The notes beneath the pieces are model-generated. The model was not told the DNA's origin, searched no databases, and was given only the letters and a program-made list of their open reading frames with translations. 64,000 nucleotides of DNA, taken from positions 1-64,000 of the forward strand of contig NIVC01000210.1 in the NCBI GenBank assembly GCA_002269645.1, given 5' to 3'. Below are positions 10,395 to 63,315 of this stretch, one piece after another (within the stretch, counting starts at the first letter, position 1; each line of letters opens with the position of its first letter). Made by a program: the position numbers and the translations under genes. Source of the stretch: Macrostomum lignano. Its lineage: Eukaryota.

Positions 10395-10662
10395 AGTAGT
10401 ATAGAAAAAGACGCTTCTAGATCAGACCTTATTTTAATGGCCGTTTGTAAGGTCTTAAGAGGGGGGACGCGAGGGGGGTGTTAGGGAGTGTTTGGAAGTG
10501 TTGGGAAGTGATTTTTATTGTTAGGGGTGATTATGGGTGATTAGATGTGTTAAGGGTGTTTAGATGTGTTTTTTTATTTACCCCCCGTGTCCCCCCTCTA
10601 GACCCTTAAAACGGTCATTAAAAAAGTGCTCTGGGTCTAGAAGCGTCTTTTTATATACTACT
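10395..10662. repeat. Polinton terminal region with an internal inverted copy of the terminus
   Basis: 10395 AGTAGTATAGAAAAGACGCTTCTAGA...GAGGGGGGACGCG versus reverse complement of the end AGTAGTATATAAAAAGACGCTTCTAGA...GAGGGGGGACACG. Confidence 0.85.
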
Positions 10663-12100
10663 ACGCTAGCAAAGTCGGATTGCAGCTTCGTAATCTCATG
10701 AGCTGCTGGCGCAGCCGCTGCCACCGCTGCCGCATCTTCATATTTGGCAGAGTCAGCAGCTGGCCTCAGCTTCTTTGAGGCCGCCACAGCAGCCTTACTA
10801 TCGCCGTATTCTTGAGCAGTTTTCAAAGCATCGGTATGAGCAGTTATATCGGCCTCTGAGAATTTCGGAGCTAACTCCGATTCAACAAGTTTACAAAGGT
10901 TTTCTAACTGCTGAAGCCGTTCGCCGTAAAACTCGTTCCAATCGGACAGAAGTTTTGCTTTCGTCTTCGCTAACCTTGCCGCCTTGCTTGCGGCTGCCTT
11001 CAGTGACTCAAGCTTGGCCTAACCAAAATGAAAGAGAAAATAGTTGTTGAAGTTTAGCTTCAGGACGTATCTATTCATGTGCAGAATGATTACGTAAATA
11101 ACTACCTATTTTTTAGCATATGTCAAACGTAGATTATATTCATCATTCGTCGGAAATTTACTACGAGAAATACAAAACTGATTGATTGTCGTTCCGCTAC
11201 GAAACGAGTAAAAACGGAGCAGAGGCTAAAGCCCACCCACCAAGCCACCAACATACGCACGCAGAGCCAAGCACCCCCTACCCAGCGCGGACAAGAGAGA
11301 GAGAGAACGTACGCAAAGCGACACAAGGCGTGGCAGAGGAGAGGGGTTTAAATTTGGATATTGACTAGTCAAGACCAATCACAAACCAACACATATATGT
11401 TTAAAGATCCTCGGCTAGCACCATTCTGACTAACATTTGTTTTAACGAAAGCTGCTTTCACATTGGAATTATACTTGGAGTACTGGAAAAAAAACAGCCA
11501 AACTTAATAATGTAAAACATGTTTCCAGATTAACTGGTTGTGAGGCACTGAGAAAATTTATTATTTATTATTCTTTGATTCTTTGATTCTTTTCTATGTC
11601 AGAATCAATTAAAATCACGCGAGACTATGCAGAATTTGAAATGTTGCGAAACAAGCTTTACCTGAAATTTACGTTGATCGTCGCTAAAATGTAAAGCGCA
11701 AAGATTCCGATCGCAGTGCTCGCAGAAGCCCATCGAAGGCTTCCCGCATGGTCTTTGAGCATCATTTTCCAAGGCTTCACATAGCAGTTTCTGTCTTTTT
11801 GTTTGACTTGTGACATCTTGTGGCGTAGCCTTAGCCACTTCAACCAGGGTGCGCAGATGGGAATTTTCAACCGGTCTTCGTCGCAAGTCCTCGAAGCACA
11901 GAGGGCATTTCGCACCACCGGATCCTGCCTCTTTTTTGACACTTTCGTAGCAGGCCAGGCACAGTGAATGGTGATTCGAGCACGCATAGTGTGGGTTATT
12001 AAAGTAATCGAGACACACCGGACAGGTAACATCGTTTATGTCGATTATAGAATTTCGTCTTCCAGCTAAAAGATACGAGCGTATAATGTATGATTATCAA

Positions 12101-12162
12101 GAGGTCACGCTTCACACACAGCTGCCATAGCGGTAAGGCAGTTGTGTGTGAAGCGTTACCTC
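12101..12162 (+). other. 26-bp-stem hairpin of pre-miRNA size within intron 1 of TRIM-like copy 1
   Basis: GAGGTCACGCTTCACACACAGCTGCC / 10-nt loop / GGCAGTTGTGTGTGAAGCGTTACCTC. Confidence 0.45.
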
Positions 12163-12459
12163 TCGATAGTGGAATTGTGTCTATTTTCGTCCAAAAACCA
12201 ATTCAAAACGGCTAGGACACAACTTCCCAGACGGGAATTGTTCACTAAGCGATTCTAGGGATTTGTGTCATAGGCATTTTCCACTTGGTGCAAGCCAAGT
12301 GATGGCCATAGACTAAACGTCTGGAACAAAAAGTTAAGCGGAACAGTCTGAAATTACCATAGACGAAACATGTTAAATGAAGTTGTGGTCTTATAAGCTG
12401 GAACTCTGCAGCAGAGGATAACATGTTCCTGTTTCCTCTGTTTGCCCTAACCTCTATTC

Positions 12460-12816
12460 ATGCGACTCATACGAATGATAAATTGGTCGAATTTGCCGAT
12501 TGAAAGCATTGACAGCTTGAATGGAAATGAGCTCAACTTTCTCAGCGACTTGAGTATGGGGGGACGTGACGAGGCGGATGACGAAGAGTTGATGGAGTTC
12601 ATCCGATTCATTGAATGCGATAACGATGATGCTCTGCCACCACTGCCAAGCAAAGAAGAGGCTTGCTCCGAGGATCCCATGCGGAACAAAACATGCAATT
12701 CGGCCGATGTGAGTGTAACGTCTAAAGACATTTCTTATATAAATAAGACATTTCTTATTATTTTACTTTTCTTACATGTATACAATCTGTTTATTCAGCT
12801 TTGTTGTATTGAATAA
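12460..12816 (+). CDS. Orphan acidic ORF or exon inside the intron, similar to ORF 61861-62106
   Basis: MINWSNLPIESIDSLNGNELNFLSD aligns with MLNYANLPDQLISGLSTEKLHWVSS; possible donor GTGAGT near 12710. Confidence 0.35.
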   Translation: MRLIRMINWSNLPIESIDSLNGNELNFLSDLSMGGRDEADDEELMEFIRFIECDNDDALPPLPSKEEACSEDPMRNKTCNSADVSVTSKDISYINKTFLIILLFLHVYNLFIQLCCIE

Positions 12817-13818
12817 AAAATATCCTCGCAAACGCATTGATACAGGAATATCAGATTGCTCATCTGCAAATGGGTATATCCAAATATAACCCGTTGGGAA
12901 TATTCAAAGATGGGGGCGGTTTGACCATAGACTATTCGCAGATAAGCAATCTGTTGTATTCCTGTTTCGATGCCTGAAAGGCGTGCAAAAATTTACTTAG
13001 TTCACAATTTCCGTCGACGCAATCGTTTGTGGCCCAAACGAAACTAGACACAATAAGACTGGCTAAAGTCAACTACAGCCAATAAATTTGCGTAAATTTT
13101 ATGATCACAAAATAATTACGCACAAAAACTGTGCGTAAAACTCAGTAACTTACCTCCGCTTGAAGAGCTCATTGCAGTGACAAGTTAGCTTATCGCGAGT
13201 TATCAGCTTTTGGGTAAAACACTCCGAAAAAACTTATTCGCCCACTGCGCCCACATTAAAGTATATACCGAAGTATCATGAAGTATATCCTTGGCCTATA
13301 TCCGACATTAAAACCTCGCGCAGCTCACAGCTCGCAAAAGCTCATACAAAATCTATTTTTAGCACAAGCAACTCCTCCCTTGGCAAGCAAAGCGAAACAT
13401 AGAATTCTGGCTTAATTTTAGCACAATCACATTGAAGCATCTTTCCAGTATTTTTTTGTATTATTTGCAGGCTCATTTTTGCTATAATTTCTTTTTGAGA
13501 AAGTCAACATTGAGTTGCTTTTTGGGTTTAGTCGACGAAATAATGAAGAGTAGCCATGCAGCATTCGCATTGATGCAAGTCAAACTGAAAATAAAAAGGG
13601 TCACTAGTACACCATTTTTCGTTCAATTCCAATCCAAGTCAGTAGTAGAGGATAACACAACTCTGCCGCAGGGAAAGCCATGGGAATTCCGTAGACTCCT
13701 ATGAGAGTACATAGGCGCATGTGTTTACATAGGAGATATTTGTATATAAGCCACAAAATTGTTCTCATAAAAAAGAATTTTTTAAAATTCTCGCTCCGTT
13801 ACATCGTAATAACTAATA

Positions 13819-14583
13819 ATGGTCGATATTGGAGAAGGCTATAAACTCCAAGTGCAAGAGTACGAAGGAGTACAGTTTATTGCGATTCGGAAATTTTATC
13901 GACATGGCAGCACAGCAAGTTTGAAACCTGGCGTTCCCGGATTTAACCTCAACATCCGACAATGGGAGAAGTTGAAAGAACTGAAGCGAACTCTCGTGAA
14001 GGCGGCCCTGGGCGAGCAACAGAGGGTCATCAAACTCGGTTTTGATAAGTTCGTTGAGGTAAAGAACGGCATCATCTGGCTAAGACGGCTTCCGGAAGAT
14101 TGTTGCGAAGAATTTTTGAAGCGAAACACTGTGGCGTTGGCACCAGCTCTGTGGCGGAAACTGTGGGAGCAGGCTGCATGGATCGACGAGCAGCTATCTG
14201 CCCCACTCCAAATGTCCGATGTGTATGAGCTGGAGTCGGGATCTTCCTCCGACAACATCGAAAATGAAGACGCGGAAGAGACCAAGCCGGTAGTGAAGAT
14301 GGAGGACTTGGAGGATGCTGCGCCTGCTGCTGCTGGCGATGTGGCTGGCATGCCATCCAATCTGCAAATCGACACAGCGTTTGCCACTTCAACGCCTCTG
14401 CAACTGAGCAAGCCTGCAGCTGGAGCGATTCCTCGGCAGGACACTGATCTGCAAGAGGACCCAGTCTGGTACCAGTTCCGAGCTCAAGCAGCCGCCGCTG
14501 AGAACGCCAGGAAACGCGAGCAGCCACCGTTCGCTCTGCGCAGATTGGTTGCCATGAAGCTGCCCAGGCCGTGCTTCGACTGA
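13819..14583 (+). CDS. Tandem PC4-like ssDNA-binding domain protein with low-complexity tail
   Basis: IGEGYKLQVQEYEGVQFIAIRKFY...PGVPGFNLNIRQWEKL fits the PC4 pattern; a second degenerate copy LGFDKFVEVKNG...LAPALWRKL follows. Confidence 0.75.
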   Translation: MVDIGEGYKLQVQEYEGVQFIAIRKFYRHGSTASLKPGVPGFNLNIRQWEKLKELKRTLVKAALGEQQRVIKLGFDKFVEVKNGIIWLRRLPEDCCEEFLKRNTVALAPALWRKLWEQAAWIDEQLSAPLQMSDVYELESGSSSDNIENEDAEETKPVVKMEDLEDAAPAAAGDVAGMPSNLQIDTAFATSTPLQLSKPAAGAIPRQDTDLQEDPVWYQFRAQAAAAENARKREQPPFALRRLVAMKLPRPCFD

Positions 14584-14743
14584 TTGCTGACCCTCTGACA
14601 TTGAGACAAACTCTGTGCTTTTTTTATCCAGACCTGCTTTCCATCTCTTTGTTTGAAAAAAATGCTTGTTTTCACATGCGCTATGCAATTTTCAATGTCT
14701 TAAGAAAAAACGAAAAATAAAATATGTTTCTTTGTTTCTGAAA

Positions 14744-15811
14744 ATGGAAAAAATTCATTTCAACCCAAATCAGCCTGCGAGCTGTTGCAGTTTTTCAAAA
14801 CTGCAACATGAACTGCGAAAAAGAGGCGAGCATATTGGAGTCAAGAGCATTGAGCAGTGTCTAAGTCAGCAGCCAGTACACACTCTGCATAAGCCAGCTA
14901 GAGTACGATTTCCAAGGGCGCCAATAATAGTGAGGGCCATTGATGATCAGTGGGAGATGGATGTGGTGAAAATGATTCCGTTTGCAAAGTATAATCGCGG
15001 GCATAAATACATTCTCACCTGCATTGATGTTTTATCTAAATTTGCAATGGCCCGAGCACTGAAGTCTAAAAGCGCGGCAGAAGTGAAATCTGCGTTTGAG
15101 AGCATGCTGAAGAGCTCAAAGCGGCAGCCGCGCACTGTCCGCACAGATCAGGGAAAGGAGTTTGTCAACGCAATTTTTCGCCAGTTCTGCATAGACCGGG
15201 GGATTCTGGCGTTTTCAACTAGCAGTGAGCACAAAGCAGCCATCATTTAAAGATGGAATCGAACTTTAAAAAGCAAGATGTGGCGTTACTTTACTCACAA
15301 CAGCACTCTACAATGGCTTGAAGTGCTGCCTAAACTGGTCAAGTCCTATAACAATACTTTCCACAGAAGCATCAAGACTACATCAATGAATGTCAGCAAA
15401 GCAAACGAGACTGAAGTGTGGATGAACCTTTATGATGGGAAAGCGATTGAGACAGTTGAGAAACTGAGAAAACCGAAGTTCTGTGAAAACCAATCAGTGC
15501 AGATTTCCAATGCACCCAGACTCTTCAGGAAGGGATACAAGGCGAACTGGAGCGAGGAGGTGTACACCATAGTGTTTAGGGCACCAAAGCATTATCCCTA
15601 CATGTACAGGATTCGAGACATGAAGGGGGAAGACATTAGAGGCCTCTTCCACGAGCATGAGCTGCAAGTTGTTCCGGACTCGCAGCGGCTGTATGTAATC
15701 GAGAAGGTTCTGAAGACTGAGAAGCGGAAGGGTAAGATCCGATATCTCGTCAAGTGGGCCGGCCACAAGTCCACTGACTGGGTGGATGAGAAGGACTTGA
15801 GAAAAGTGTAA
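14744..15811 (+). pseudogene. Polinton-type retroviral-like integrase with C-terminal chromodomain; one in-frame stop
   Basis: HTLHKP, DQWEMD, TDQGKEF, AII*RWNRTL (TAA at 15248-15250), KGYKANWSEE and chromodomain IEKVLK...YLVKWAG...WV. Confidence 0.93.
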
Positions 15812-15841
15812 GATACCGACATTGTGCAGCTATTCCCAACT

Positions 15842-16216
15842 ATGAGAAGCATAATCATTTGTAGCGAAAATGCTGAAGGTACTCCTAGTGACATTCATTT
15901 TCAACTGCCTTCACCTATTTACTTAGATCGAAATGTGGACTATGAGGCAGGTCTGGCTGAAATCCATCTGCCTGCTGCATGGTTCAATGTTGACGAGCCT
16001 TACTGCTTCACTGTCTCAGATGGAAGAGAGCATGAGACCCTGGTTCTTCAACCCGGACGCTTTGCTAGAGTGGAGGAACTGGTTGAGTGTGTTAATAAAA
16101 ACATAGCCGCTATGTTTTCAGCTTTGCTATGTTTACAGTCAGCCACCCAATGTCCAATGGTTTCATCAGCGCTTCCAGGTATTGAGCCCTTGTTGAATTC
16201 CCGCACGCTCCGCTAA
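15842..16216 (+). pseudogene. Truncated Polinton minor capsid (penton-like) protein N-terminus
   Basis: SDIHFQLPSPIYL...YEAGLAEIHLPAAWFNV matches the N-terminal pattern of Polinton minor capsid proteins; the ORF ends after about 125 aa. Confidence 0.7.
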
Positions 16217-16957
16217 ATTCTTTTGAATACGCCGCCAACTTTACCCCGCCCAGTCGAGGGTGGCAATAAAACTGATAACTGCTGAGCACTCTCTCCTTTC
16301 AGCAACAAAGCCACCGCCGCCAGCTCCCAGACAGCGGGAGAGAGAGGCTTGGCTACCACTATTTTTGTTTACAGAAATTTGTTATTACCGATAAAATTAT
16401 ATAATAAAGTATTAGTATAATACTGAATACAATAAAATATCGCTGATATTTGCCAATCGTTCAACACAATTTCTACAGATTCCCCTAGCTCGCCTCTGTG
16501 CATACTTGCGGATTCCCCCATGAGGCGCCTATGTACTCTCATTAGGAGTCTACGGAATTCCCATGGCTTTGCCTGCGGCAGAGTTGAGCTATGCAAACAC
16601 ATAGGCGCCTTCTGATCCGGGCCCACGGAATTTCCGTGGCTTTCCCTGCGGCAGAGTTGTGTTATCCTCTATTACTCAAGTCATATTCTCAATTTATAAA
16701 AAACAGACATTTAGTTTCGCAGTTCTGTATTAATCTTACCAAACCAACATTCATACTAGATGAACCGAAACTCAGTTTAAAAAAATCGTTTAAACTTAGA
16801 CACTCAACGAAAGTGGTTTAATTATGTCCATGGAAGGGCTTGATGATTCATGAATTTCTTCCATCGATTTGCCGGGTTTATATTCGAATAAGAAAAGTAA
16901 CATTACATTTTGACTATGGAATAAAAACTGTTTCCTAAAACTCTGTTTTTTAACTTC

Positions 16958-20077: not shown

Positions 20078-21052
20078 ATGGCCATTGAAAACGACTTCCG
20101 CTTTGCCCTAATCTCAATTGTGAGCGTGTCAACAGTCTTCAACGCCCTGTTTCTAATTTTTACAATTCAGAAAAAGATTGGCACCCGTCTCTGCACCGTC
20201 CTGTTGCGCAGTCAGTCAGCCATCGACTTGCTGCTCATCGGAGCAAACTTGCTGGTTATGCAGTTCAGTAGCTACCTGCCGGAACTCAGCCAGTCAATGC
20301 CAGACTTCATTTGGCAGCTCTACTGCAAACTGTACATGAGCCAGCTCCTCTATTGGGGTCTTGTCTGCATGAGCGTCTACAATATCCTGGCCATATCAAT
20401 TGAGCGCTGCATCTGTCTCTGCTGTCCGTTCTGGTATCGTTTAAACAAGCAAAAGCTGCTGGCAATGCTTGTCATGCTGATCATCGTTTCACCGTTTCTG
20501 GTTGAGGCACCGTACTGTCTGGCTGCGCGATCCGTTACTTACGTAGACAATGGAAACGGAACGTTTGTGACGGCTTGCCCGTACAATTTCGACCCAGAAG
20601 ACGAAAAAATCATTGGTATTTCCTATGTAACCTTGTTCTGGATTTTTCCTTTCTGTTTGATTGTACTGCTCTACTTGTTCATCATTTGCCAAATCCGAAA
20701 ATCGGTTGGCATGCGGGAGAGTGCAGCTGCTGGCAGCAGAAATGCCATCAGTGCCGCCGCAAAAAAACTGACCCTGACGACTGGCGTCACAGCGGCAGCC
20801 TTCGTGCTTCTATTCGCTATGGACAGCGTCACATTTCTGCTGTACAACATCGAGACAAGAATAGTCCTGCCACCGTTTTTTGGCGAACTGGACTCGTTCC
20901 TTGTGAGCATGAACAGCGCGGTAAATCCGCTAATCTACTTGATATTCATGCCGGAGTTTCGACGATTCTTGCTTTGCCGACGACGAGTTCAAAGCTCAAC
21001 TGGAAAAAACAGCGGCGCACAGCCAGGAGTCCCCGGTGCTGTGTCTGCTTAA
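20078..21052 (+). CDS. Class A (rhodopsin-like) GPCR, intronless, orphan
   Basis: Seven hydrophobic segments, ISIERC (DRY-equivalent), NSAVNPLIY (NPxxY), Cys in ECL1/TM3 and ECL2. Confidence 0.92.
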   Translation: MAIENDFRFALISIVSVSTVFNALFLIFTIQKKIGTRLCTVLLRSQSAIDLLLIGANLLVMQFSSYLPELSQSMPDFIWQLYCKLYMSQLLYWGLVCMSVYNILAISIERCICLCCPFWYRLNKQKLLAMLVMLIIVSPFLVEAPYCLAARSVTYVDNGNGTFVTACPYNFDPEDEKIIGISYVTLFWIFPFCLIVLLYLFIICQIRKSVGMRESAAAGSRNAISAAAKKLTLTTGVTAAAFVLLFAMDSVTFLLYNIETRIVLPPFFGELDSFLVSMNSAVNPLIYLIFMPEFRRFLLCRRRVQSSTGKNSGAQPGVPGAVSA

Positions 21053-23187
21053 AACTATCTGTGTCTGCAGACCATTGCGTTTGATCTAGACTGGGTTCTT
21101 AGAGTTCTTGGAGTAGTGCATGCACATTAGCTCTTTAGAGTCCACTTTTGTCTAATGAAACCAAAAAACAATTTTGTTATAACCGTAAAATGCAGTTCGA
21201 AGCAAATGAGTTATTTTCTACTTTATGAAATTTTCCACAAATTGCGATCGAACTTATAAAGCATTGTTCGTTTCTAATATTTTGTGAAATTTACTTTTTC
21301 AGCCTGAAAGCTCTCCGGAATCTTCGACTCGATGCGTCTAAACTTCATGTCCTGAAAAACGGGTAACGAAAATAGTTACATAGCTACATAGTTATTTAGT
21401 CTGATAATATATATCATTCCATAGCACGTTGTCAATCTACAAGAGCTATTAAGATTTCTGACTAGTAGCGTAATTGCTAAATGTTACTAAAATGGGACAT
21501 TTTTTGGTTCATGAAGCTGTATTAAGATCAATACGTCTTTTAATGCGCTTTTAATTGCAGTAACTTACAGATAGCTACTAGGAAATAAAAAACTTGTTCC
21601 ATTAAATGGATCGATGCACAAAAAGGCAATGCATTCGGGCACAATAGTCGGACCCGAAACATCAAATATCCCATCATATTTTCTTTTTTTCTTGTTATTG
21701 ATTGACTTCTTTACTGATAGACGTTAACTGAGACATCGATCGAAATGGATCTGGCCTAAGAATGAATCCAATTTATTTGTCTAGTTGCATCGCTGGACTA
21801 ACCACGCATTTTCCGGAGAAACTTAGTTGGGAAACAAAAAGGTTTATTTTCTTATTTATTTTCCGGAAATGAAAAACGCAAATGATTTTTTAAAAACTAC
21901 GGTTTTTTCTTGTGTAATTTGTTTTTTTCATTAATTTATTGGTTTCTATCAGTCGAACTTCGATTACTGTAAATGGGGCATCAATAATCCCGGAAAATTT
22001 TATGAAACAAATAACAAAGCATTGCTATTGCATTGGATTGTTCTAACTTTAAAAATTTCCCGAACAGTCACAAGGAAGAGAAAAGCAAAGAGCGTTCGGA
22101 GGAAATTTCAATTGTTCGTGTATACGAATTTCTACATGGCGAAACCCCATTTATCTTAGTGAGGCGAGAAAAGCAAAAAATATGAATAAATCTGTTGTGA
22201 AGACACAACTGTAGCCATGCTTATAATGTTCACTACCAAGTCTTTAATAATATGAGCTGTTTTTTCAAAGTACGAGTATTTTATGGACAAACTTTGCTGC
22301 ATTTGAAATCCGGAAGTCGAGAAGGCGAGAATCGTCATCAGTGCTGAGAAGCAGACAAATTCCTAACCGACCTCTGGTGAAACTTCTTCTAACTTAGTTG
22401 CCAGTCATGTTCTGCAATATTTCCACATTCTTATTTCAAGTGACGGGTCGAAGTTCTGAAAATAAAAATTCTAGGCCATGAAGATGAACAACAAAGACCA
22501 GGAACAAACCCAAATCGAAGAGTTATAACTTGATGAAGCTTTATTTAATATTCATTTAGGGTTAGGTTCTCCAAAAATGTGTAGCTAAACCAAACTAAAG
22601 AAGTAAATCTTGCCCGCAAACTGGAAGAGTTGTACATTTTCCAAAGATTTAAGGGGAGGAGGGCGCTATAGAAAAAGACAAGGCACGGCTTGAATTTAAA
22701 GCTCGTACAGTACATTCAAACAAAATAGCCAAAATGGTTCGAAAATCTACTTATGCAATTACTTTCGTTGAAATCTATGCAATATACAAAAATAAAAAGT
22801 CAAATATAGAAGTCTGTTTATTTTAAAGCCGTTTACGCTCGTGTGATTACCGATCAAGTATGGCTTACGTTTGATCATTTAGGGTAAAATTAAGAAATCT
22901 TAAAAGATTAAAAAAGTACACAAAACAAAAACAATGCGCAGAACGGAAGAGGAATCGATAAAATTCGATCTAGCTTATTGATTATTGACTTTTAGAAGCC
23001 ATATGCAATAAAAAATAGAAAAAAAAGAATTTTGTCGCCATTCACTTCACCAATACGCGGAACAGACGAATTCAGCCTTCATTCAGAGATGCTTGAACAC
23101 CAGCGCTACCGGTTGAGAAGTGAGCAACCTCTCGAACTCCACTATTTTGAGCCAAAACGGTGCGCGCAACGCTAGGGATATTGGTGC

Positions 23188-25347: not shown

Positions 25348-25348
<1 letters not shown>

Positions 25349-25390
<42 letters not shown>
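25349..25390. repeat. (TG)n microsatellite
   Basis: Direct reading. Confidence 0.98.
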
Positions 25391-25396
<6 letters not shown>

Positions 25397-28874: not shown

Positions 28875-28970
28875 TAGATACTCAACAGTAGATACTCAAC
28901 AGTATTATAGTTTTAGTTCATTAGTCAGAGTACTTCAATTCAGTGTGCAAGTCGATGCAGTGGAAGTCCT

Positions 28971-37699: not shown

Positions 37700-37767
<68 letters not shown>

Positions 37768-48680: not shown

Positions 48681-48928
48681 ATACCTAGCTTAGATACGAG
48701 ATAATTTGTGTCTCCAGGGTTTCTGTTTACCGGCTCGGTCCCTCTTTAGGAACTGGACTCGCTTTAGCACCGCTCAATAATACTCATCATCTACGTCTTT
48801 TTCCGTTTCTACTCGTACGTAGTAACGTAGTATATTTTAAAGTAGAAACATGGATTCTAAATATCATTATTAGAATGTTAGAATGATACTAGAATGTTAT
48901 TCGACAGATAAACCCTGAAATTTTAGAT

Positions 48929-49700
48929 ATGAGCTCAAGAGACGACGAAGACCTGAAGTGCCCGGTGTGCAAATACATCTTTACTGATCCGTGCTTCATG
49001 TGCCCAAACCACTACACTCTGTGCCGCAAATGTCACAAACGCGTTTTGGAGATGTCCCTTTTTGGACCCGCAAAGTGTCCGGTGTGCCGAAAGATGCTTT
49101 CCACACCAACAGAGCACGCCTCCATGGCCAGGATCGTCAAAAAATCCAACTCAAAACCGCCGCCCAGCGCCACCTACCAGGTACGCGAACAGAGATCCCG
49201 GTGCTTCAACTCAGTCTTTGTCAAGTGCGGCCACTGCGACCTGAATGTTTCCAATCTGCACTTCGTTGAAAATCGGATGCAGTTTCAGGTCATTTAAGCT
49301 TAAGTATTTAGCAGGTATTAACTCGAAAACACATAATACGGAACGCTTGCCTTGCCAGACTGAATGCGAGAACTTGTTAAAATCTGTGGGGAATGACGCG
49401 AAGTAATGCGACAAAGTCAGCGCTAAACTGCAGCCTTAGAAAGCTCAGATCACTAACCTTAGCAAATTTATCGATCTAGAAAAAAGCGCTTAGAGCAGCT
49501 CTAGAGAACCACAGAGCAGAGGCTGGAGCAGGCAGCGGCTGGGTCCTCCCGCCGAGCTGAGGCAGACAGCCTCAGCGCCGAAGCTGGAGTCGCAAGATTT
49601 CGGACCGCCTCCAACCGATGAGCAGAAGAATGAAATCGAAGCTTGCAAAGCAAGGCTGGTCTCCATAATCGGGACTGCAACACGAACTTTGGGTGGTGTC
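48929..49700 (+). pseudogene. TRIM-like copy 5: intact RING/B-box exon, coiled-coil exon with nonsense mutations
   Basis: Exon 48929-49288; the next exon starts at 49359 (ACT GAA TGC) and hits TAA after 15 codons, with further stops downstream. Confidence 0.82.
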
Positions 49701-51962: not shown

Positions 51963-52986
51963 ATGAGCTCAATAGAATACGAAGACCTGCTGTGCCCAGT
52001 GTGCAAAGACATCTTTACCGATCCGTGCTTCGTATGCCCGAACCATCACATCCTGTGCCGCGAATGCCACAAAGGCCTTTTGGAGACGTCCCCTTACACT
52101 GCAAAGTGTCCGGAATGCAGAGAAAAGCTGTCCACACCGAAGCAGGACGCTATCAGAGCCAAGCTCGTCCAGACTTTCACCACCAGCGCCACCTGCCAGG
52201 TGCGCGAAGACGAAACCCAGTGCTGCAACTCAGTCTTTGTCAAGTGCGGTCACTGCAACCTGAATGTTTGCGATCTTCACTTCAGTGAGCATCGACTGAA
52301 GTTTAAGGTAATGTAAGCTGAAGTATTTATTAGGAAGGATTCAAAAGCAAACTAACAGAACGGAACGCTTGCCTTCCCAGACTGAATGCGAGAACCTGTT
52401 AGAATCTGTGGAAAATGACGCGACTGAATGCGAACGAGTCAGCGCTACACTGCAGCCTTGGAAAGCTCAGATCGCCAGTCTTATCGAATTTATCGATATA
52501 GAAAAAGAGCGCCTCGAAGAGCTGCTGAGAGCCACAGAGCAGAGGCTGGAGCAGGCAGCTGCCGGGTCCTCCCGCCGAGCTGAGGCAGACGGTCTGCGAG
52601 CCTCCATTCGATCTGGCCAACTGCAGCAAGCCAAAGCCATCGCAGATCAACTGCAAGCTGCTGCTACTGAAGCGCCAAAGCTGGACTCGCAAGATTTCGG
52701 GTTGCCTCCAACCGATGAGCAGAAAAATGAGATTGAAGCTGGTAAAGCAAAGCTGGAAACCATAATCAGGACTGCTGCAGAAATTTGCGGTGCTTTTAGC
52801 GGTAGCAATGAGTTTCATGTTCCTTCTTATGATTCTTCGTCCTTGAGCCCTGCAGAACTCTCGAGCCCAATCTATGCTGAACACCTCTTGCAAAGTGAGG
52901 TAGTCTATAACCCAATGGCCCTTAATACAGATCCCCATGAATTCGATGCGGATGACTATTCTGCTTTTTTAGTGAGACTAGATTAA
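51963..52986 (+). CDS. TRIM-like copy 6: RING + B-box-like + coiled coil + acidic tail, intact (about 316 aa)
   Basis: Exons 51963-52307 and 52381-52986 joined by a 73-nt phase-0 GT-AG intron. Confidence 0.85.
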
Positions 52987-53793
52987 TAATTGGAGTATTA
53001 ATCTGGTCGGTTACTCTTCGCTGCAGCCGGGTGCCCGGAACTTCTATTCAAGTCAAGTTACTTCTATTCGACATTAACTCCCATATGCTAGACGCAACCC
53101 ATAAACTCAAAACTGTACAATGGTTGGTTGTGTATGGTTTAAAGGTCGACAATGATTAATTTCGTCACGAGTGACTAAAATTAATCACAATATCAGTAAA
53201 TCTCTAAGATCTTCATTGTCTTTGATAAAACCATGCACACAATAACATTGTCTTTTTAAAAGTATTTTTAAAAGCCTCAAATAATGACTTTGAAGCTGTG
53301 ATGTTGTCGGTTTAAGTGGCTCCGCAAAGGGCTGTTTTGACATACAGTTTCTCACTTAATATTTTCCATTTTTTGTATGCGCACGTTTACTTGTAGTAGT
53401 GCCCAACGAATCTTTATCAATTGCTAATCATTGCGTACATTGTAATTTTTGCGTACATCTGTAGGGTCTACGCGCGATCAATACCTTCTGTATTTGCTTT
53501 TCCCTCGCCAGCCAATGAAAACTCCGCGCATATATTATGCTAATTTTCCTGCGCTCCTTTATTAACCCCTCCTGACGGCAAGCGGGGGTTTTCACCTTCT
53601 CTCCTCGGCTCGCGCGCTCTCAGTTTGTTATCTCCTTATCTCTCGCCCCGGCCCCACCCCGAGTGGACCAGACATGTTTACGCCTTCTCGGCTCTCTCGC
53701 TCTCTCTGCCTCACTCCGCCACGGGTAGCCACGCCTCCGCTAGGCCCAATCATACCACTCCTGTCTGCCTGCTGCCTGTACGAGCTCTTTGAG

Positions 53794-53867
53794 CACCGCC
53801 ATCACTGTATACTCACCGCCATCACTGTATACTCACCGCCATCACTGTATACTCACCGCCATCACTC
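53794..53867. repeat. 20-bp minisatellite (CACCGCCATCACTGTATACT), about 3.7 copies
   Basis: Direct reading. Confidence 0.9.
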
Positions 53868-55945
53868 TGTTAATTTGCTTCATCCCCATCCTCAATATAC
53901 TCAATCTACTCAATTCAAACCCATTGTTGCAGCCGCCAGTGCCCCCGCGCCATAAGCCTCTGTATTGACATTAATAATTATAATAAACCAGTTGGCGTCC
54001 TTGGTTTGTTTACCGCCATTGCCAAGTGCTACCGCTACAAATCCACTCCGCCATTGTTGAGTTCCCCATTATTTTGGAAAACTGCAACTAAAACGTCACA
54101 AAGCGTTAAGTAATGAGCGTACAGCATGGGACATGAGTTGCGTCGAATGGCTCGTATGACATCCATAGTTATATGAGAAACAGAACGGTCCCTGATTTTT
54201 TTCTTTGACTTTTTTCCGCTTTTCTTCTCACTGTATGTTCACCTGTTTTTCTATAGATTTTAGTCTGGATTTTTTAAAACATTTCCTTGGACTGAAGATA
54301 ATCCTTTAGTTGACATCATTACCTAAATTTTCTTTGTTGTTTTAGCTGAATTTGTATGCCTCTCTACGAGTTCACTTGGAGGCATTAGAAAAGTATTTCT
54401 AGGTTTTTTAAGGTCTAACAGGGACTGTGTCATTTCTATTTTGGGGCCTAACTTAAATTGGGCGTCGGTTGTCACAGCTAATGAAACGCTCAATTTGATA
54501 TACAGCAGTAAATTTGTTTGCATATTCATGCGCTCCATTTTCGCTCTGAACTATGTGTACTGAACTGAACAATAGCAGGATAATTGGTGCGCTTGATATA
54601 ATAGTTGCTTCAAGAGGGGATAGAGTGTACGAGAACAAAAGTATTTGCAAAAAGTTAGGAAAACAACGCGTTTTTAAGGCTAATCATTTCAATCTGAAAT
54701 AAAAAATTACTTACTCTTCATTTCGATGCTAATGCTTTTATCACTAATGGTACATCTAGATCGTTAAATCATCGCTGCCCAAACACTGTATTTCAGTCGC
54801 AAAGAGACTTGAGACTGTAAATTGTTGTTATCGAAATTTTTATAATGATAAAAAGAATAATGTCTGAAAAAGTGGCAGGTTTTTTTATATCGCAAGTTAT
54901 AGTGATTTGCTTGTGACTAATATCTGGTCCGAGTTCGCGTGCTAACAGGCTGCTATTAGAGTAACGAGTAAACACACAACGAATTAGTGGCAACCGATGA
55001 CTTATGGATTATTCGCTTATGAATACTTGTTTTTTTCACAGACACTAATGGTACATGTGGTTAGTAAACTATCTGATGCTAAGCAGATAATTGGCAACGA
55101 AACAGCTATAAGTTTCGATGGTACGCTCGTATGACTTCGAAGATGGCCTTAGTGGGAAACACTACTTAACAGTAGAAAGACCACGCTGTTTTTCTCCATG
55201 GGAAATACCACGGGGTGTATTACAAATACGCCTGATCTCTCTGGCCTTAAGTTCTCTATATCTGTCTGGCCCTCTTCATATTCCCACTGTATTCGTCTCT
55301 TCAGGACTTGTTCTAGGCAAGTTAAGTTTAATAAATGGGAGAATTTATTTCAAATTTGCCGGACTAGATAACACCAGTTCTCGTTTTTAGTAACAATGGT
55401 TAAAAGTAGCAACTATCTACTAGAGACCACGCTGTTTTTCTCCATGGGGAAATACCACGAGGTGTATTACAAATACACACGACCGATTCCACGATAGCTC
55501 GCAAACCGAATTACTGATTTTCGTAAAAGTCCACGATATGGATAGAAATTTTCCGCCCTTTCCGACGAACTAACTTTCAAAGTCATCCGACGTCAGCATC
55601 GTCAAGATATTCAACGATTCTTGTCGAAGACACTGGGGGCAAGAACATCCAACACTACACTGTATAAACCTTTATGGTAAATCCATATTGGCTCAATAAT
55701 CTGGGTCCATTTGTTATCAACATCCCAGGCACCAGGGCCCCTTTCATCACCGTCTGGAGCATCGGCGGCGACCGTCGGGACCTTCAACAAAAGCACCCGA
55801 TCGGCATCTCAGAGACGGCTGCGTTCTCAAATCTGAAATGGAAGAACCCTCTTCTGCATGCAGGATTCAGCCAGTAGACATAATCAGTGAATTGAAATGG
55901 ACGATGGCGATCCTCTAGGTTGACAAACAGGCGACTTTCGGGACC

Positions 55946-56050
55946 TTCAACGGAGTGCTACCATGCGGCCCTGACGAGCTTTCACCTCAACATTGTGTTT
56001 TTTACAAGGTACCAAACCAGGTATGTATACATATTATACAATGGTCGTGC
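55946..56050 (+). repeat. About 105-bp direct repeat, copy 1 (possible transposase fragment)
   Basis: TTCAACGGAGTGCTACCAYGCGGCCCTGACGAGCTTTCACC also present at 58085. Confidence 0.75.
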
Positions 56051-56096
56051 ACCATTTTCAGCATTCAGCTCTGTCTGGACGACATTTGGGACATTT

Positions 56097-57650
56097 GATG
56101 GGTTCGGCCTTTTTAAGCCTACAGCTTCAGGCCTCAGAACTCAGAAATGAATCACTTAGAACTCTGGCCTCTCACTCCTGTCAGATGGTCAGCCCCATGG
56201 TAGCTAGATTGTGGGCGAGCAGCAAGGTCCTATAGCTAAGAGAAGACAGCGAGAGACAAGCAGGGAGAATTTGAAAGGTAGAAATTAGCTAATCCGCAGA
56301 TTAACTAACTCGCTGCCAGTCCGTGCGCCCCGGCTCACCAAACCGGAGCTATCGAAATCGGACTTCCGACTAGAGGGGCACTGCACTTACCTGCCATCTA
56401 GTGTCTTTTAGCTGTCTAAATCTCGAAGTCATAGTCGAATAGAAGGGACGCTGCTGGGACTAAGATCGCATTGCCATGCAGGGACAGAGAGGACTTCTGC
56501 AGGGGGTTCTTGCGCTGGCGAGCCTTTATACACTACTGAAACTGAAAATACTATTTCATTACCAAATTCCCAGAAGTAAATGTACAAGTACACGTAATTG
56601 CACGCTTTTTGGCACTAAATGTGTTAACACGTCGGCAGATAGCGATGATGTAGATGTATTGTCGCCTTTGGAGATCTTCAGACAAATATTTAACTTGTCC
56701 GAGCCGCCCGAGACTGCGCGATAGCACCAGTCTGGCTCTGAATTTGCATGCTCAACATAATGATTTCTTAGATCGACTGATTGACTGGGAACTGTGCCGC
56801 TTCCGGTTCACTGTGACCCCTGCCTCTAGATTTAGACGCTCATCTCAGCTGGCATTGCGAAAAAGAAAGAAAACGCTAAGTCTAACTTCCAGATTTGACT
56901 TTCTCACTTAATCCGCAATCCTAAACACCTTAGATTGGGTCAGAGCTAATGGCTAATTTTAATATTAATTGACACTTCTGCCTCGAGATTGGCACGCAAA
57001 ATAGCAAGTAAGCAAAATTGCAAATCCTATCAGACTACCTAGAAAGGGGTCAGACAAAGGGCGCACCCAGTTAAGCAGGTCAAGAAAGCCTCTCACCAAA
57101 ACAATCAGAGGACCTAACTGCCGGTAGCCAAAGAATCCACGGAGACCGAGCCGCCCGGACGAAATGCTGCTGCTGATCTTAACTGACGAGTGCCGCCGCT
57201 ACTCTTCGCTTGCCGGTTGTTGTTGCTGCTCTTAGTTCGCGGTCGGGAAGTACTGACGATGCTTCTCAGGGGGAGTTTAGCTGCAGAAGCCGAAACTGCC
57301 GGGGGGAGGGAGACCAGAAGTCGACAGGGATCAGACTGGCAGGACCGGCCAAGGCCAAGGTCAGGGCGTGCCAGAAAGTTGTCGAGCGCGGGCCGAGTTG
57401 CCGCCTTTTATAGCTCTCGCGCGGCCGATTTGTTATAATGCACGCCGAATTTTCTGATTGGCTGAGAGCATTTGTTAAAATAGGCGCCGAATTTTCTGAT
57501 TGGTCGAGCCGGAGGCAGTCAGGTCGACTCTGATTAGCTGAGCTCAAGACCCCAACACCTACCCCACCAGGTGGCCTTCGGACCCCAGGGAAGTTGACAG
57601 GTGCGGTCATAAATCATGGGCAAAACGCAATAAAAGCCCCTTGTCTAGAC
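56097..57650 (-). repeat. Long promoter-bearing repeat, copy A (LTR-like, non-coding)
   Basis: Reverse complement aligns with 59050-60545; repeated CCAATCAGAAAATTCGGCG and CTATAAAA on the minus strand. Confidence 0.75.
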
Positions 57651-58084
57651 ATCCGGGCGCCAAAAGTGACAGCAAAACGCCCATAAATAAAAGGAGAAAG
57701 TAACAGAGCGAGTGGGGAGAAAGCTGGAAAGACCTCTTTGACCCAGACAGGCTGGAGCCAAAAGTGACAGCTAGACGGCCATAAATCACCGAAAACAGTG
57801 AAAAAGCCGCAAATCTGGGGGTCAGAATGGGGTCGAAAACACTCCTCCCAGACTTGGTGTCGCCTGTCTAGACTGTTGGAGGTCAATCCGTCTCAAACCC
57901 AGACAGTCTGACCCTTACATTAAGTCCTTAGTATAATTAATAGTAATGCTATAACATAGTATAAAGTTCAGCCCAGATGAGGGAATTTGAGAGAAAAACC
58001 AAACCTAGCCTACTGACAGTAAGGGAAAAGCGCATCGAAGCCAACTGCGCTGTTTTAAGATTGAAAAAAGGTGCGTCCTCATCA

Positions 58085-58190
58085 CATTCAACGGAGTGCT
58101 ACCACGCGGCCCTGACGAGCTTTCACCCCCAACATCGTGATTTTTCTGTCAAGGCACCAAGCCAGGCATGTGTGCATATTATACAATGCT
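58085..58190 (+). repeat. About 105-bp direct repeat, copy 2
   Basis: Matches 55946-56050. Confidence 0.75.
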
Positions 58191-59049
58191 TTTTACCATG
58201 TTAAATTGGAGAGTTACAAATTTAACTTGCGACTGAAAACTATAAAATATTTAATTTGTCTAAAATGATATTACTGTGACTTCACGGTCTTTCTGAATGA
58301 AAAGCCCGGTCGCAATGGTGTCAAGCTGTTCCTGCTGACATCGGCTGGGAATCCAGAAGAGATTCAGGATGACATGGACATCCGCTGTGTTCAATGCGGA
58401 AATCTGCACTGGCAAAGGAACACTGCTGTCCACTACTTGAAAGAAGTATAAAAATATTTTTGCATTTATGCAGCCAGTGCATTTAACCTGAAAGTGAAGC
58501 CGAATGTACTATTGTTCGGTGAAAGAAAAACATAGGAGAGATGAGAGATGCATTTAAGTGAGACTTTATGGTGTGCTTAAAATCTATAGTTTTGATTAAT
58601 GAAGAGTTGACCCACCAACTGCAGAAAATGCTAAGTTGGCACTTTGTAATAAGTTTTACTCTTTTAAGCTCTTAATGCTTCGTATAGGCCATCATATTAT
58701 CTAAAAAAATGTAGGCAAACTAAACAATGATATACTCGTACACTATAAGGTAAATAGTGACAGCCACCTGCGCCTCACTCAGTGCTGGGGCTGGCGCCAG
58801 ATGGTCTGAGAGGATGCGGGCGGTAGCTTTTTTTCTCATCATTTTGACAGTCCATCAAGATTTATGAGGTCAGGGCCTATTGTTCGTGTTCACTCAAGCG
58901 TGTGACAGCTTTGGCAGCTATGCGTTTTACCTCTAAAAGTACGATGGGATTAGCGATTAGCGATTTCTCTTCATTATCTTCACTTTCTAATTAATAAGAG
59001 CTTTCTAATGTATATTTTTTCATTAATTTCTGCCAATCCTACGCGGAAA

Positions 59050-60545: not shown

Positions 60546-61860
60546 TATACTAAAAATGATCACAGCTAAAAATGTCCAAAAACGATTTTATCGAAATGAT
60601 TAAACCTAATTGTCGGTTAAAACCTAATTGTTCAAGTGAAACAGTGCTGTACACGAGTTCATGGGCATGAAACTTTAACTTAACTTCTGCTAGTGTAATA
60701 ATCTAGGGATTTCAGATATGGACTTATCAGGGACTTAGAATAATACGAGAATAAGGGTTTATGTTAAAAAGTATCTAGACAAAAATTTCAAAATAATTAT
60801 TGAACTCATAACTCGCTATCGTCGTTAACTTTTCTTAGCTCAAGTGTCCCTTTTCGGGGTATCAATGAATGAAATTTCGTACCACTTTAAAGCTCACTTT
60901 CAGGGAGGTTATTGACATAGATTTGATTTTGCGGGATTTAATCGATCACTTTCCCGGATATATTGCAAGGATTATTGTATGTATCTAAATAAGCGAGCTT
61001 CTCTCTTCTCTTCCATCGTGACTCGAAAAATTTCTTAATGAAATTTTGTCTATGGTAAGAATGTGGGGGCTTCGCCCCCACACCCCCAGCAGGGGCTTCG
61101 CCCCCACACCCCAATCCCCAACTTCAACCATAGACATACAAGTATGGCTCCGGGATTTATCTGAATACATCCCGCAAAATTAAAGTAGTTTAAATAAGAT
61201 ATTCTATGGATTTTTCGGTCGGTATTTCACTTAAATCCCGAGAGCCGATACAAATCCCTCGGGCCTCAGGCCCTCGTGATTTATACAAATAACTCCCTCA
61301 AAAGGCATGTTTAATCTGATACTTAAACCCCAAAAGACTAACGCAGAATAAAAGCAAGTGGCACAAAAGACCGGCAGACGCGGCCCAGAAAGGGAAAACG
61401 AACCCCTTAAGCGACGAAATATATTGATTTGGTAATTTAAAAGAGAAAAAATTTTTTTGCCAAATTACGCCGACTCAGCGGCCGCGACGCGTGACTAAAT
61501 AGCACAGAGGCGGAGGGGGAGGCTGCCCTAAGCCCTGCACGCACGCAGAACACCAGCGCCCCACCAACCCACCAAAGCGAGGCCAGGCCGGCGCGGGGGG
61601 TTTAAAACCAGTTAGAGTCAGATACCTGCCTCAAACTGACGTATTATACTTTTATAGGATAATTATGATTTAGTTTTCTTCTACGCTTTCGTACTTTTAT
61701 AATTTCGTAACAGTAACGCAACAATTTTCGGCTTTTTATTTCAGTTCATTCAATCAGACGACGTTTTACTTTTTCCAAGCTACTGATTATACCTTGTATT
61801 TTTGGACCATGGACACTAGCATCCGATTGGCAGCGGTAAACACGGGATCTCCGATAATGT

Positions 61861-62106
61861 TTACCTCCTCACAGCGTCCGCCATCTGTCTTTCAGAGGAC
61901 TTCGGGATTCCTTCTCGTTCAATTTCTTTAAGTTCCTCGAGCGCATCTTCGCTTAGGTCCTGAATCTCTTCAGCGTCTAGTTGTCGAGCGAACTCGCCAC
62001 TCAATTCTTCCAAATAGCGGGTTGCTGACTCTGACGACACCCAATGCAACTTCTCTGTTGACAGACCACTGATAAGTTGGTCGGGAAGATTCGCATAGTT
62101 CAACAT
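61861..62106 (-). CDS. Orphan exon-like ORF, possibly the N-terminus of a Crypton/tyrosine-recombinase-type protein
   Basis: ELKEIEREGIPKSSERQMADAVRR followed by AG/GTAAAC donor; N-terminus similar to ORF 12460. Confidence 0.35.
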   Translation of the reverse strand: MLNYANLPDQLISGLSTEKLHWVSSESATRYLEELSGEFARQLDAEEIQDLSEDALEELKEIEREGIPKSSERQMADAVRR

Positions 62107-62772
62107 TCTTAGTCAGTAGTTGATTCGACAGACAGAACTTTCTAGAATCGTTGCTTCAAAACGCGGCTCCATAGCCCCGTCCTCTCGATTAATCCGAGTG
62201 TTAGTCTATGGCACAAAGATTTGCCTATCCACCGAAAAAAAGCCTTCGACCATGGACTTTCTCAACTTTCTGCCTATCTCTAACATAGTGCCCGCAAATT
62301 TCCACATTGTTACCCGCAAATTTCTTGCATTGATTAAGTTAGTGACAATCTTATTGACATAGAATTTTGCTAGTTGTCAATGCGGAATTCTATGTTAATG
62401 TTATATTGTTGCGATGCATGCATCATTCGGGGCTCAAGAATGATCATACAAGAAAAAGATATTATATGTTTTATGCTTTTAAAAAGCTCATTAAAACAAA
62501 TTTTAAAAAGCATCTTGTTCATGCTCTATAGAAGTTAAAAATTCCTACTATATTATCAGGTTGAAATGTTGCATAATCATCATATTGGCATATAATTTAA
62601 TCGAACTATATTTTAAGCACGGCCGTGCTGATGCAAATTTCACACTGCAGGTAAAAATAGTTAAATATTTTCTTTCAAGTATTCGCTGGCTGCATTCGAA
62701 ATGGCAGTTGTCATATATATCGAAGTTTCATTAGTTCGCATTGCTTTTGGCTTGTCTCTCAAGTCTCCATAG

Positions 62773-63315
62773 TCAGGGTACAAAGCGACGCAGAATCTGC
62801 CTGAACGGCTCCTCAGGATGGCCTCTACCAGCGGCCGAGAACCTCCCAGTCGGTCGAAGGACGCCGCTAGGCGTGAGTATCGTCGAGTCGCCGTGCACCG
62901 CCTCTAGAAACGGTCGCTCCATCTCGTGTCCCAACTCTGTCGCTTTTAGATCGAATTCCTGACCGGATTTTACCGGCGGAGACACCTTCGGCGTCTTAGT
63001 CAACGAATTCAAGTTGTGAAGTCCTCGACGATTAAGTCTGTTGAAGGCGACGCTGGCCACTTTTAAGTCGCCAGTGTCCAGAGCTTCGCGCAACTCGACA
63101 GCATCGGCAGCCGCGGAAGTTGACAGGGCAGCTCCGCGCGAGGAATCCGCCATCTCGGCGGCCATAGCGGAGAGCGCATCAAATCGCTGCCGCTGATGCT
63201 CCAGGGCATCGCGACAGTCGGCAAAGAGGCGACTCCACTGCTGCAGAGCCGACTGGCGCTGCTTGGCTGACTGGTTTGCCGACTCTGCCGCTCTAATTAA
63301 AGTGCTGGACTCCTC
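62773..63315 (-). CDS. TRIM-like copy 7, coiled-coil exon (RING exon presumably beyond the window)
   Basis: Acceptor TTTTCTTTCAG then phase-0 EESSTLIRAAES...SALQQW...ELREAL, which aligns with TECENLLESVE...ATLQPW...GLRASI of copy 6. Confidence 0.6.
   Translation of the reverse strand, partial: EESSTLIRAAESANQSAKQRQSALQQWSRLFADCRDALEHQRQRFDALSAMAAEMADSSRGAALSTSAAADAVELREALDTGDLKVASVAFNRLNRRGLHNLNSLTKTPKVSPPVKSGQEFDLKATELGHEMERPFLEAVHGDSTILTPSGVLRPTGRFSAAGRGHPEEPFRQILRRFVP

Follow-up and report, generated by a model that had tools for sequence, protein, structure and literature searches.

Two kinds of described systems are among the closest to the locus reported here. Vertebrate TRIM proteins combine a RING, B-box1, B-box2, a coiled coil and a PRY/SPRY domain, and loci of the TRIM5/6/22/34 type form tandem clusters with pseudogenes and differences in copy number. 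The Polintons (or Mavericks) and the Alpha adintoviruses are the second comparison (PMC4028283, PMC10748475, PMC8502044). Polintons are 13-25 kb long, with inverted repeats of 100-1500 bp and target-site duplications of 5-8 bp (PMC10748475); the virion module of the Alpha adintoviruses is marked by genes similar to phospholipase A2 (PLA2-like), and lectin- or fibre-like genes occur in related midsize linear dsDNA viruses (PMC8502044). The subject of this study is a gene cluster of the free-living flatworm Macrostomum lignano, contained in bases 1-64000 of contig NIVC01000210.1 (89,468 bp, assembly Mlig_3_7). This whole stretch of 64,000 bases, in which window and contig coordinates are equal, is referred to as the window. 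It holds seven paralogs, here called copies A to G, of a gene encoding a TRIM-like RING protein, and two elements related to Polintons lie at one edge of the cluster. We consider it probable that the cluster is a Macrostomum-specific tandem family of TRIM-like RING E3 ligases, with lively turnover under weak purifying selection and with ordinary Polinton-related insertions at one end.

A pattern scan of the window found five RINGs of the form CPVC..C-x-[NS]-H-[HY]..C..C..CP.C, three on the reverse strand (11896-12024, 24698-24826 and 39732-39848) and two on the forward strand (48959-49087 and 51993-52118). Each RING shares one exon with a second Cys/His motif, C-x7-C-x-H-C-x4-C-x2-H. In the alignment all eight RING ligands are invariant, and the second zinc motif has 7-8 ligands within about 35 residues. 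An all-against-all BLASTP comparison of stop-to-stop open reading frames (ORFs) matched the paralogous exons with E-values of 1e-17 to 1e-68; the same comparison also linked the coiled-coil exons that lie downstream and added copy D, which has no RING. In every copy the exon with the RING and the zinc motif ends with F[QKE] followed by GT in phase 0, and the transcript-based joins read FQ/AEF in the B type, FE/ADC in copy C, FK/TEC in copy F and FK/EES in copy G. An earlier note, made from the sequence of the window, had described a common RING spacing, a reduced B-box-like motif and a phase-0 intron ahead of the coiled-coil exon, and all three are seen in the pattern scan and in the transcript-based joins.

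The seven paralogs are real, and three of them are intact. Copy B (23072-24988, reverse strand) has four exons and encodes 444 amino acids with a RING, a B-box-like motif, a coiled coil and a beta-rich C-terminal domain of about 170 residues; the model is 95% identical to an annotated M. lignano protein on another contig. Copy C (protein P0129; 38821-40110, reverse strand) begins with a short exon, which is followed by the RING/B-box-like exon and by a coiled-coil exon that ends in an acidic tail. Copy F (P0005, BOX15_Mlig033057g1; 51963-52986, forward strand) encodes 316 amino acids, contains a phase-0 intron of 73 nt, and its spliced model is 100% identical to BOX15_Mlig033057g1. Copy A (10663-13172, reverse strand) has an intact exon 1, with the ATG at 13172, and an intact RING/B-box-like exon, and its coiled-coil exon is cut. 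The similarity to copy B ends abruptly at 10662/10663, about 118 codons into the coiled-coil exon, at the terminus of a large element described below, and the remaining 3' part of copy A was found nowhere in the window. Intron 1 of copy A is enlarged by about 1 kb (12094-13137), the same intron measuring about 100 bp in copy B, and the extra sequence includes a near-perfect palindrome of 35 nt (12095-12168). Copy D (46565-47162, reverse strand) is a fragment, of which the second zinc motif and a coiled-coil exon remain, the latter with one frame change. Copy E (48929-49904, forward strand) is a pseudogene with two in-frame stops, a frame-shifting deletion of 74 bp and further insertions and deletions in the coiled-coil exon; conserved Cys and His residues of its zinc motifs are replaced.

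Copy G (62773-64000, reverse strand) is represented in the window by its coiled-coil exon (62773-63315) and part of an intron. The earlier note had counted it as a partial copy, which applies to the window; the gene extends to contig base 65314, with a typical RING/zinc-motif exon at contig positions 64693-65067, past base 64000, and encodes the 319-residue protein P0131, so that it is a full member of the family. BLAST gave no link between the coiled-coil exon of G and the family, but a profile search and the annotated P0131 did. The RING exon of G and further members are contained in the sequence beyond the window edge (L006, NIVC01000210.1 bases 64001-75314): an unannotated G-like copy at about 66681-67837 on the reverse strand, and a 446-residue member with a B-like tail at 69465-72007 on the forward strand. 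The cluster therefore has at least nine members, seven in the window and at least two further along the contig. Since a genome-guided transcriptome underlies the GenBank gene models of this assembly (PMC5730564), the annotated members are transcribed, namely copies C, F and G, the fragment D, the 446-residue member and the counterpart of B.

The relationship of the family to TRIM proteins was examined in sequence and in predicted structure. Pfam RING models match copies B and C. Among PDB sequences the best matches are the RINGs of TRIM31, 30, 5, 34 and 21, and the RING-B-box stretch of TRIM3 aligns over query residues 7-132, across the RING and the domain behind it. A search of 1.84 billion representative proteins with a profile of the RING exon gave 7 clusters at E ≤ 1e-30 and 15 at E ≤ 1e-10; those of the strong ones that were traced or are named by a source are from M. 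lignano. The next relative (E 1e-12), which is the best one outside the cluster, is again an M. lignano protein, BOX15_Mlig005321 (P0137). The second zinc motif of the family recurs behind its RING (CEHCDADLCSRH), but the protein differs by an alanine/arginine-rich stretch, by a borderline NHL-repeat match at the C-terminus and by its location outside the cluster; its three near-identical copies are expected from assembly redundancy. After P0137 come fish and frog TRIM25/TRIM39-like proteins, which match from the RING through the second motif, and vertebrate proteins of this kind are the nearest relatives outside M. lignano.

In these TRIM25/39-like matches the aligned stretch occupies the B-box1 position, has the same C-x-H-C-x4-C-x2-H pattern and is weakly recognised by the ANCHR-like B-box model; the motif of the family, in its longer form C-x7-C-x-H-C-x4-C-x2-H-x3-[HD], aligns with this position. 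The order of RING, zinc domain and long coiled coil is common to the Macrostomum proteins and to the vertebrate TRIMs (TRIM25, TRIM39-like, finTRIM/bloodthirsty type and the products of TRIM5/6/22/34-type loci), and the second motif is common to them and to the B-box1 of TRIM25/TRIM39-like proteins. Unlike the vertebrate proteins, the family has a single zinc domain after the RING, in which a long first loop replaces the first C-x2-C pair, and ends in short acidic tails or in a beta-rich, possibly C2-like, domain instead of PRY/SPRY.

An AlphaFold model of copy F, calculated with 48 aligned sequences, has a mean pLDDT (predicted local distance difference test) of 81.6, with values above 90 for residues 11-210. 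It contains a RING flanked by helices, a small domain rich in beta structure at residues 77-103 (pLDDT above 90), a long helix at 104-192 (block-mean pLDDT of about 89-97) and two helices, 196-212 and 227-255, which in this monomer model fold back after the long helix in the fashion of a TRIM coiled coil. The top Foldseek matches of the model are the RINGs of TRIM69, TRIM21 and TRIM25. The term 'TRIM-like' used in the earlier note holds with respect to architecture, considering that the closest RINGs by sequence and by fold belong to TRIM proteins, that the second motif aligns with B-box1 and that a helix of about 90 residues followed by a hairpin is confidently predicted.

The proteins could instead be adaptors similar to TRAF or SIAH, with a RING, a zinc finger, a coiled coil and a beta-sandwich. 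TRAF and SIAH proteins also begin with a RING followed by one or more zinc fingers, and the TRAFs add a coiled coil and a beta-sandwich. The Pfam Sina_RING model lies near or above its cut-off in the family, and it passes for copy C with 31.2 bits against a cut-off of 29.3; the NHH motif allows a C-x3-H-x2-C spacing; the Foldseek alignments to the SIAH1 RING-ZnF1 and to the TRAF5/6 RING-ZnF are longer than those to the TRIM RINGs, and a beta-rich domain ends the B-type copies. On the other hand, Pfam found no zf-TRAF, Sina_ZnF or MATH match in the family, and among the 95 distant matches of the profile the B-box model is found in 28, with respect to 5 for zf-TRAF and 4 for Sina_ZnF (TRIM_CC and PRY are found in 11 each). 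Moreover, the 7-8 ligands within about 35 residues resemble a B-box with two zinc ions and align with the B-box1 of TRIM proteins, the helical hairpin behind the long helix is TRIM-like, and the beta domain matches C2 and not MATH in a weak fold search. On these grounds we regard a TRAF/SIAH-like identity as improbable.

Within the TRIM-like interpretation, the formal membership of the family rests on a B-box that is partly demonstrated. With Pfam only the RING was recognised in the family, and B-box (E ≤ 0.1), TRIM_CC, PRY/SPRY, C2, MATH, zf-TRAF and Sina_ZnF gave no match; neither Pfam nor the profile search revealed an orthologous named TRIM subfamily or one of the canonical C-terminal classes (SPRY, NHL, COS-FN3 and others). 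The family is probably a very divergent TRIM derivative. An intact protein consists of a RING with all eight zinc ligands, a small second zinc domain with a Cys/His pattern similar to that of B-box1, a helix of about 90 residues with a helical hairpin and a C-terminus specific to each subfamily, which would set the target or the cellular location. From this architecture we infer that the proteins act in a TRIM-like manner, as RING E3 ligases on a coiled-coil scaffold with a variable tail, and the coiled coil itself would be dimeric and antiparallel.

The C-termini do differ, as the earlier note had stated: copy B ends with the beta-rich domain of about 170 residues, copies C and F with acidic tails and copy G with yet another tail. 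The description of one of them as 'C2-like' is weakly backed by a low-confidence model of the B-type protein. The fold search with this model placed many C2 domains on top (best match 1wfj, E 5e-3, template modelling score 0.58), and a profile of the B/J-type C-terminal domain gave no matches among PDB sequences. The C2-like nature of the beta-rich tail in the B type and in the 446-residue type may thus be taken as a lead rather than a result.

Two other colinear versions of the cluster are present in the assembly, on contigs NIVC01002920.1 (sequences L001 and L002) and NIVC01001491.1 (L007), with flanks 93-99% identical to the window. In the interval that corresponds to window positions 47167-58758 they carry E/F-type copies, all in one orientation; on NIVC01002920.1 these are four open frames, and on NIVC01001491.1 one such copy is reduced to a fragment. 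The same interval of the window has F intact, E as a pseudogene and D as a fragment, with E and F oriented opposite to D. Copy D lost its RING at a rearrangement breakpoint near 47167, and its counterpart on NIVC01002920.1, copy H4, retains it. Since the block of high identity with the other version begins at 47167, inside the RING exon of D, and H4 has a RING, it follows that D lost its RING through an inversion or a rearrangement of that kind. Another RING exon was lost independently, as was seen when L007 13515-13880 was compared with L002 6680-8834, where the counterpart of copy H2 is a fragment of the coiled-coil exon. Left of 19286, in the fetched part of the other version, two paralogs encoding G-protein-coupled receptors (GPCRs; L001 19430-21925) replace copy A and the elements. 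A gene-conversion tract is present in the counterpart of B, in the form of a stretch identical to copy A. The segment encoding EQRLEQAAAGSSRRAEA (52540-52590, and likewise in copies H1-H4) is near-invariant among the E/F-type copies in variable surroundings; this could reflect gene conversion or a functional site.

The rapid turnover that the earlier note had proposed is borne out by these data: copies A, D and E are damaged, the three versions differ in copy number, orientation and integrity, and a gene-conversion tract is present. The subfamilies are 33-42% identical in protein, and the family has at least five clusters at 50% identity within one species. The synonymous divergence is 0.02-0.13 between the versions, 0.2-0.3 between A and B, and above 1 between C and the F type; since it spans values from 0.02 to more than 1, duplication has been long-running. 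This pattern is consistent with a birth-and-death mode of evolution that included some gene conversion.

The differences between copies and versions might also represent, for the most part, the decay of genes made redundant by a recent duplication of the genome or of chromosomes in the DV1 line, rather than a long birth-and-death process specific to the family. In the assembly of the DV1 line, duplicated blocks with an identity of 95% or more add up to 180 Mb, and the line carries extra large chromosomes (PMC5730564); moreover, the window version has one intact E/F-type copy against more in the other two, and the ratio of nonsynonymous to synonymous divergence (dN/dS) is intermediate everywhere. 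Such decay alone accords poorly with a subfamily identity of 33-42%, with a synonymous divergence above 1 between C and the F type as compared to 0.02-0.13 between versions, and with at least five 50%-identity clusters in one species. We therefore judge it unlikely as the main cause, although part of the decay in the window version may reflect the redundancy of the DV1 genome. On the birth-and-death interpretation, the changes in the cluster comprise the duplication and inversion of copies, deletion, gene conversion and pseudogenisation, while purifying selection is weak, and the redundancy of the DV1 genome probably aids this remodelling.

Selection was evaluated with pairwise Nei-Gojobori counts. 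The dN/dS value is 0.6 for A vs. B, 0.3-0.8 among the E, F and H copies and 0.14-0.30 for B vs. its counterpart. For the five open E/F-type copies it is 0.52 overall, and in windows of 30 codons it goes from 0.2 in the RING core to 0.9 in the hairpin. Two pairs that include copy H3 gave 1.1-1.2 in the coiled-coil exon; none of the 30-codon windows (range 0.2-0.9) exceeds 1. These values suggest that constraint is weak yet present, as under weak purifying selection, and dN/dS does not support positive selection. With respect to the dN/dS test put forward in the earlier note, the ratios are indeed elevated (0.2-0.9), but in no 30-codon window above 1. Unlike the fast-evolving vertebrate TRIM loci, the family gave no evidence of positive selection or of immune regulation.

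The left edge of the window (positions 1-10662) is occupied by the polymerase-side part of a large element, whose right terminus adjoins copy A. The left edge of the window is the start of the contig, so that everything at this edge is cut by the contig start, including the left side of the element. Its GC content is 27-34%, as compared to 39-49% in the rest of the window. The element encodes a protein-primed family B polymerase (pPolB) with an Endonuclease VII-like insert (Pfam Endonuclease_7); the polymerase gene (5065-8692, reverse strand) is divided into three pieces by two frame changes and has no internal stops. A fibre-like gene (479-1587, forward strand) carries a 57-bp coding repeat in 7.5 copies and, at its C-terminus, an F5/8 type C (discoidin, lectin-like) domain; it has one frame change. 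The frame changes in these two genes could be long-read indel errors; the other ORFs of the element are open. The polymerase has 5,789 homologs at E ≤ 1e-3, many of them in the genomes of molluscs, echinoderms, spiders and aphids, and PF03175 or PF02945 is found in some; searches of PDB sequences with the polymerase pieces were uninformative. The contigs of the closest pPolB relatives (48-54% identity) also encode an rve integrase domain, a double-jelly-roll-like capsid domain, a Pox_A32 ATPase and a PLA2-like protein, and show weak colinearity with the window.

The pPolB of the animal Polinton class, the fibre- or lectin-like gene and a terminus starting 5'-AG are shared with Polintons and adintoviruses. 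The element differs from them in being visible for about 10.7 kb and at one end, with integrase, capsid, ATPase and protease genes outside this view; the integrase and the capsid module would lie past the contig start. The designation 'Polinton/adintovirus-like' is thus suggested by the polymerase and its relatives and not by a full gene set. The literature search returned no paper linking Macrostomum and Polintons.

The visible terminus begins 5'-AGTAGTAT, read inward, and lies within a foldback of 280 bp (10389-10668), the arms of which are about 90 nt long, 82% complementary (94% in the first 33 nt) and begin 5'-AGTAGTA. The six bases outside the arms are mutual reverse complements (TAGAGT and ACGCTA) with no direct repeat, the outer one being host sequence. 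For this reason the idea that the foldback is an independent miniature element with its own target-site duplication was rejected, as its flanks are reverse-complementary and not direct repeats.

The join between this AT-rich element and copy A could be an artefact of assembly, namely a chimeric contig end, in which case no copy would be truly interrupted. The contig does open with the element, whose GC content is 10-15 points lower than in the host, and an odd foldback forms the boundary. However, the homology between A and B stops exactly at the 5'-AGTAGTA terminus, a type of terminus shared with a second, small element that has a clean 6-bp duplication, and no other part of the window holds the 3' part that A lacks. 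We leave only a slight chance to an artefact. On our interpretation copy A, at the edge of the cluster, is interrupted by the terminus of the large element, and the small derivative is integrated just upstream of this copy.

The small element (13641-16676) is 3,036 bp long, Polinton-derived and non-autonomous, and is located upstream of copy A, about 470 bp from the start codon. It is bounded by terminal inverted repeats of about 66 nt, starting 5'-AGTA[GA]TAGAGG, and by a perfect 6-bp target-site duplication, CAAGTC (13635-13640 and 16677-16682). Its ORFs encode a PC4-like protein (13819-14583, forward strand), an integrase (14666-15811, forward strand) and one protein of unknown type, with no polymerase or capsid genes. 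The integrase has an rve core (E 2e-16), a chromodomain-like C-terminus (Chromo, sub-threshold at 3e-4) and one in-frame stop, and is 36-38% identical to integrases of contigs that bear pPolB and capsid genes. The rve integrase with its chromodomain-like tail, the inverted repeats, the 5'-AG ends and the 6-bp duplication are all Polinton features. The element differs from Polintons in its length (3.0 kb vs. 13-25 kb), in its repeats (about 66 nt vs. 100-1500 nt) and in having no pPolB or capsid gene; since its size and its repeats are below the Polinton range (PMC10748475), it is a non-autonomous derivative. The 'two independent Polintons' of the earlier note are therefore two Polinton-related elements, of which one is partial and bears pPolB and the other is a 3-kb derivative with an integrase as its only Polinton enzyme.

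Both elements stand at one edge of the cluster, beside the same copy A. That the cluster had been 'hit by viral elements' is accurate inasmuch as the break of copy A coincides exactly with the end of the large element and the small one lies about 470 bp upstream, but it describes a single edge. The further claim, that this may be a locus of conflict between the host and Polintoviruses, was not sustained: the rest of the window and about 86 kb of additional cluster sequence from the three contigs (L001, L002, L006 and L007) gave no polymerase or integrase fragment of this kind, dN/dS is at most 0.9 in any 30-codon window, and the genome is rich in repeats. More than half of the M. lignano genome is repetitive (PMC5730564), and therefore insertions beside genes are expected.

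In a broader form of this proposal, the cluster would encode restriction factors against viruses or mobile elements, similar to TRIM5/22 or to the finTRIMs of fish, and the locus would record a conflict with Polinton-like viruses. The TRIM-like architecture, the restriction of the family to one lineage, its pseudogenes and variable C-termini, a dN/dS well above that of typical conserved genes and the contact of two Polinton-related elements with the same copy are all in line with it; moreover, most reading frames of the large element are open and its base composition is foreign, so that it may be recent. Against this, no alignment window has a dN/dS above 1, Pfam found no SPRY or other known virus-binding domain, and the elements are confined to one cluster edge, with none in the other 86 kb, in a genome of which more than half is repeats. 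Furthermore, an insertion that truncates a gene says nothing about the function of that gene, and the destruction of a gene by an element is not evidence that the gene acts on the element. We consider such a restriction-factor role very improbable. Still more so is its most specific form, suggested by analogy, in which the family, some members of which would have a C2-like membrane-targeting tail, would serve flatworm innate defence against Polinton/adintovirus-like viruses, and the recent-looking AT-rich element in copy A would record that conflict. As no expression data by tissue, stage or condition were found in the literature, an antiviral reading remains an analogy with the vertebrate TRIM clusters. 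Both elements are better read as ordinary insertions in a repeat-rich genome, which would have no special relation to the family.

Several points weigh against our interpretation of the locus as a TRIM-like family with turnover, weak constraint and ordinary insertions. The Pfam B-box and TRIM_CC models miss the family itself, and the hhalign comparison to B-box1 reaches 79% probability over 22 columns only, with a TRIM set that was chosen partly by motif. Foldseek with the F model matched the RING alone, with no B-box or coiled-coil structures, and the RING-zinc-finger structures of SIAH1 and TRAF5/6 were also listed. The AlphaFold model of the B-type protein, obtained from an alignment of 10 rows, is poor (pLDDT 41). 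The dN/dS values are pairwise counts on paralogs that undergo gene conversion. As to the three versions of the cluster, they may represent alleles, older duplicates or copies carried by the extra large chromosomes. Of the large element one junction is out of view, and therefore an insertion into copy A is indistinguishable from an insertion followed by a deletion. As for expression by tissue, stage and condition, the gene identifiers gave no matches when looked for in the literature and in the supplements of two M. lignano expression papers.

On this interpretation, the locus adds a divergent, species-restricted TRIM-like family to the lineage-specific expansions of RING ligases in invertebrates, and clearly illustrates the remodelling of such clusters by inversion, deletion and gene conversion in a recently duplicated genome. 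It also documents, in a free-living flatworm, a mostly open Polinton/adintovirus-like element and a small derivative with a perfect target-site duplication. The locus by itself has no bearing on flatworm antiviral immunity, for which it would matter only if data on expression or distribution tied the family to viruses.

Other genes and repeats were observed in the window. A gene for a rhodopsin-type GPCR lies at 20078-21052 on the forward strand. Between copies B and C there are three paralogs of about 300 amino acids, 42-68% identical to each other (28974-29900, reverse strand; 30389-31306 and 35756-36700, forward strand), with a signal-peptide-like start, conserved cysteines and no Pfam match. 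The three-copy family of secreted proteins and the GPCRs were considered as part of the finding and set aside as neighbours. A pol fragment of a long-terminal-repeat retrotransposon, with RNase H and the H2C2 domain of the integrase, lies between copies C and D (43768-44808, reverse strand). Two arrays of a 9-bp unit (85 and 77 copies) and one of a 16-bp unit (72 copies, 99% matches) are located at 25931-26698, 28183-28875 and 32810-33969; the 9-bp arrays translate as long CRY repeats, which mimic RING patterns in a regular-expression scan. A dispersed repeat of about 250 bp is present in three copies, 75-83% identical (31505-31744, 41452-41719 and 63447-63767), one of them in the intron of copy G. 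The repeats of the window, including the retrotransposon fragment, the dispersed repeat, the microsatellite-like arrays and the insertion in the intron of copy A, are expected for a genome of which more than half is repetitive (PMC5730564).

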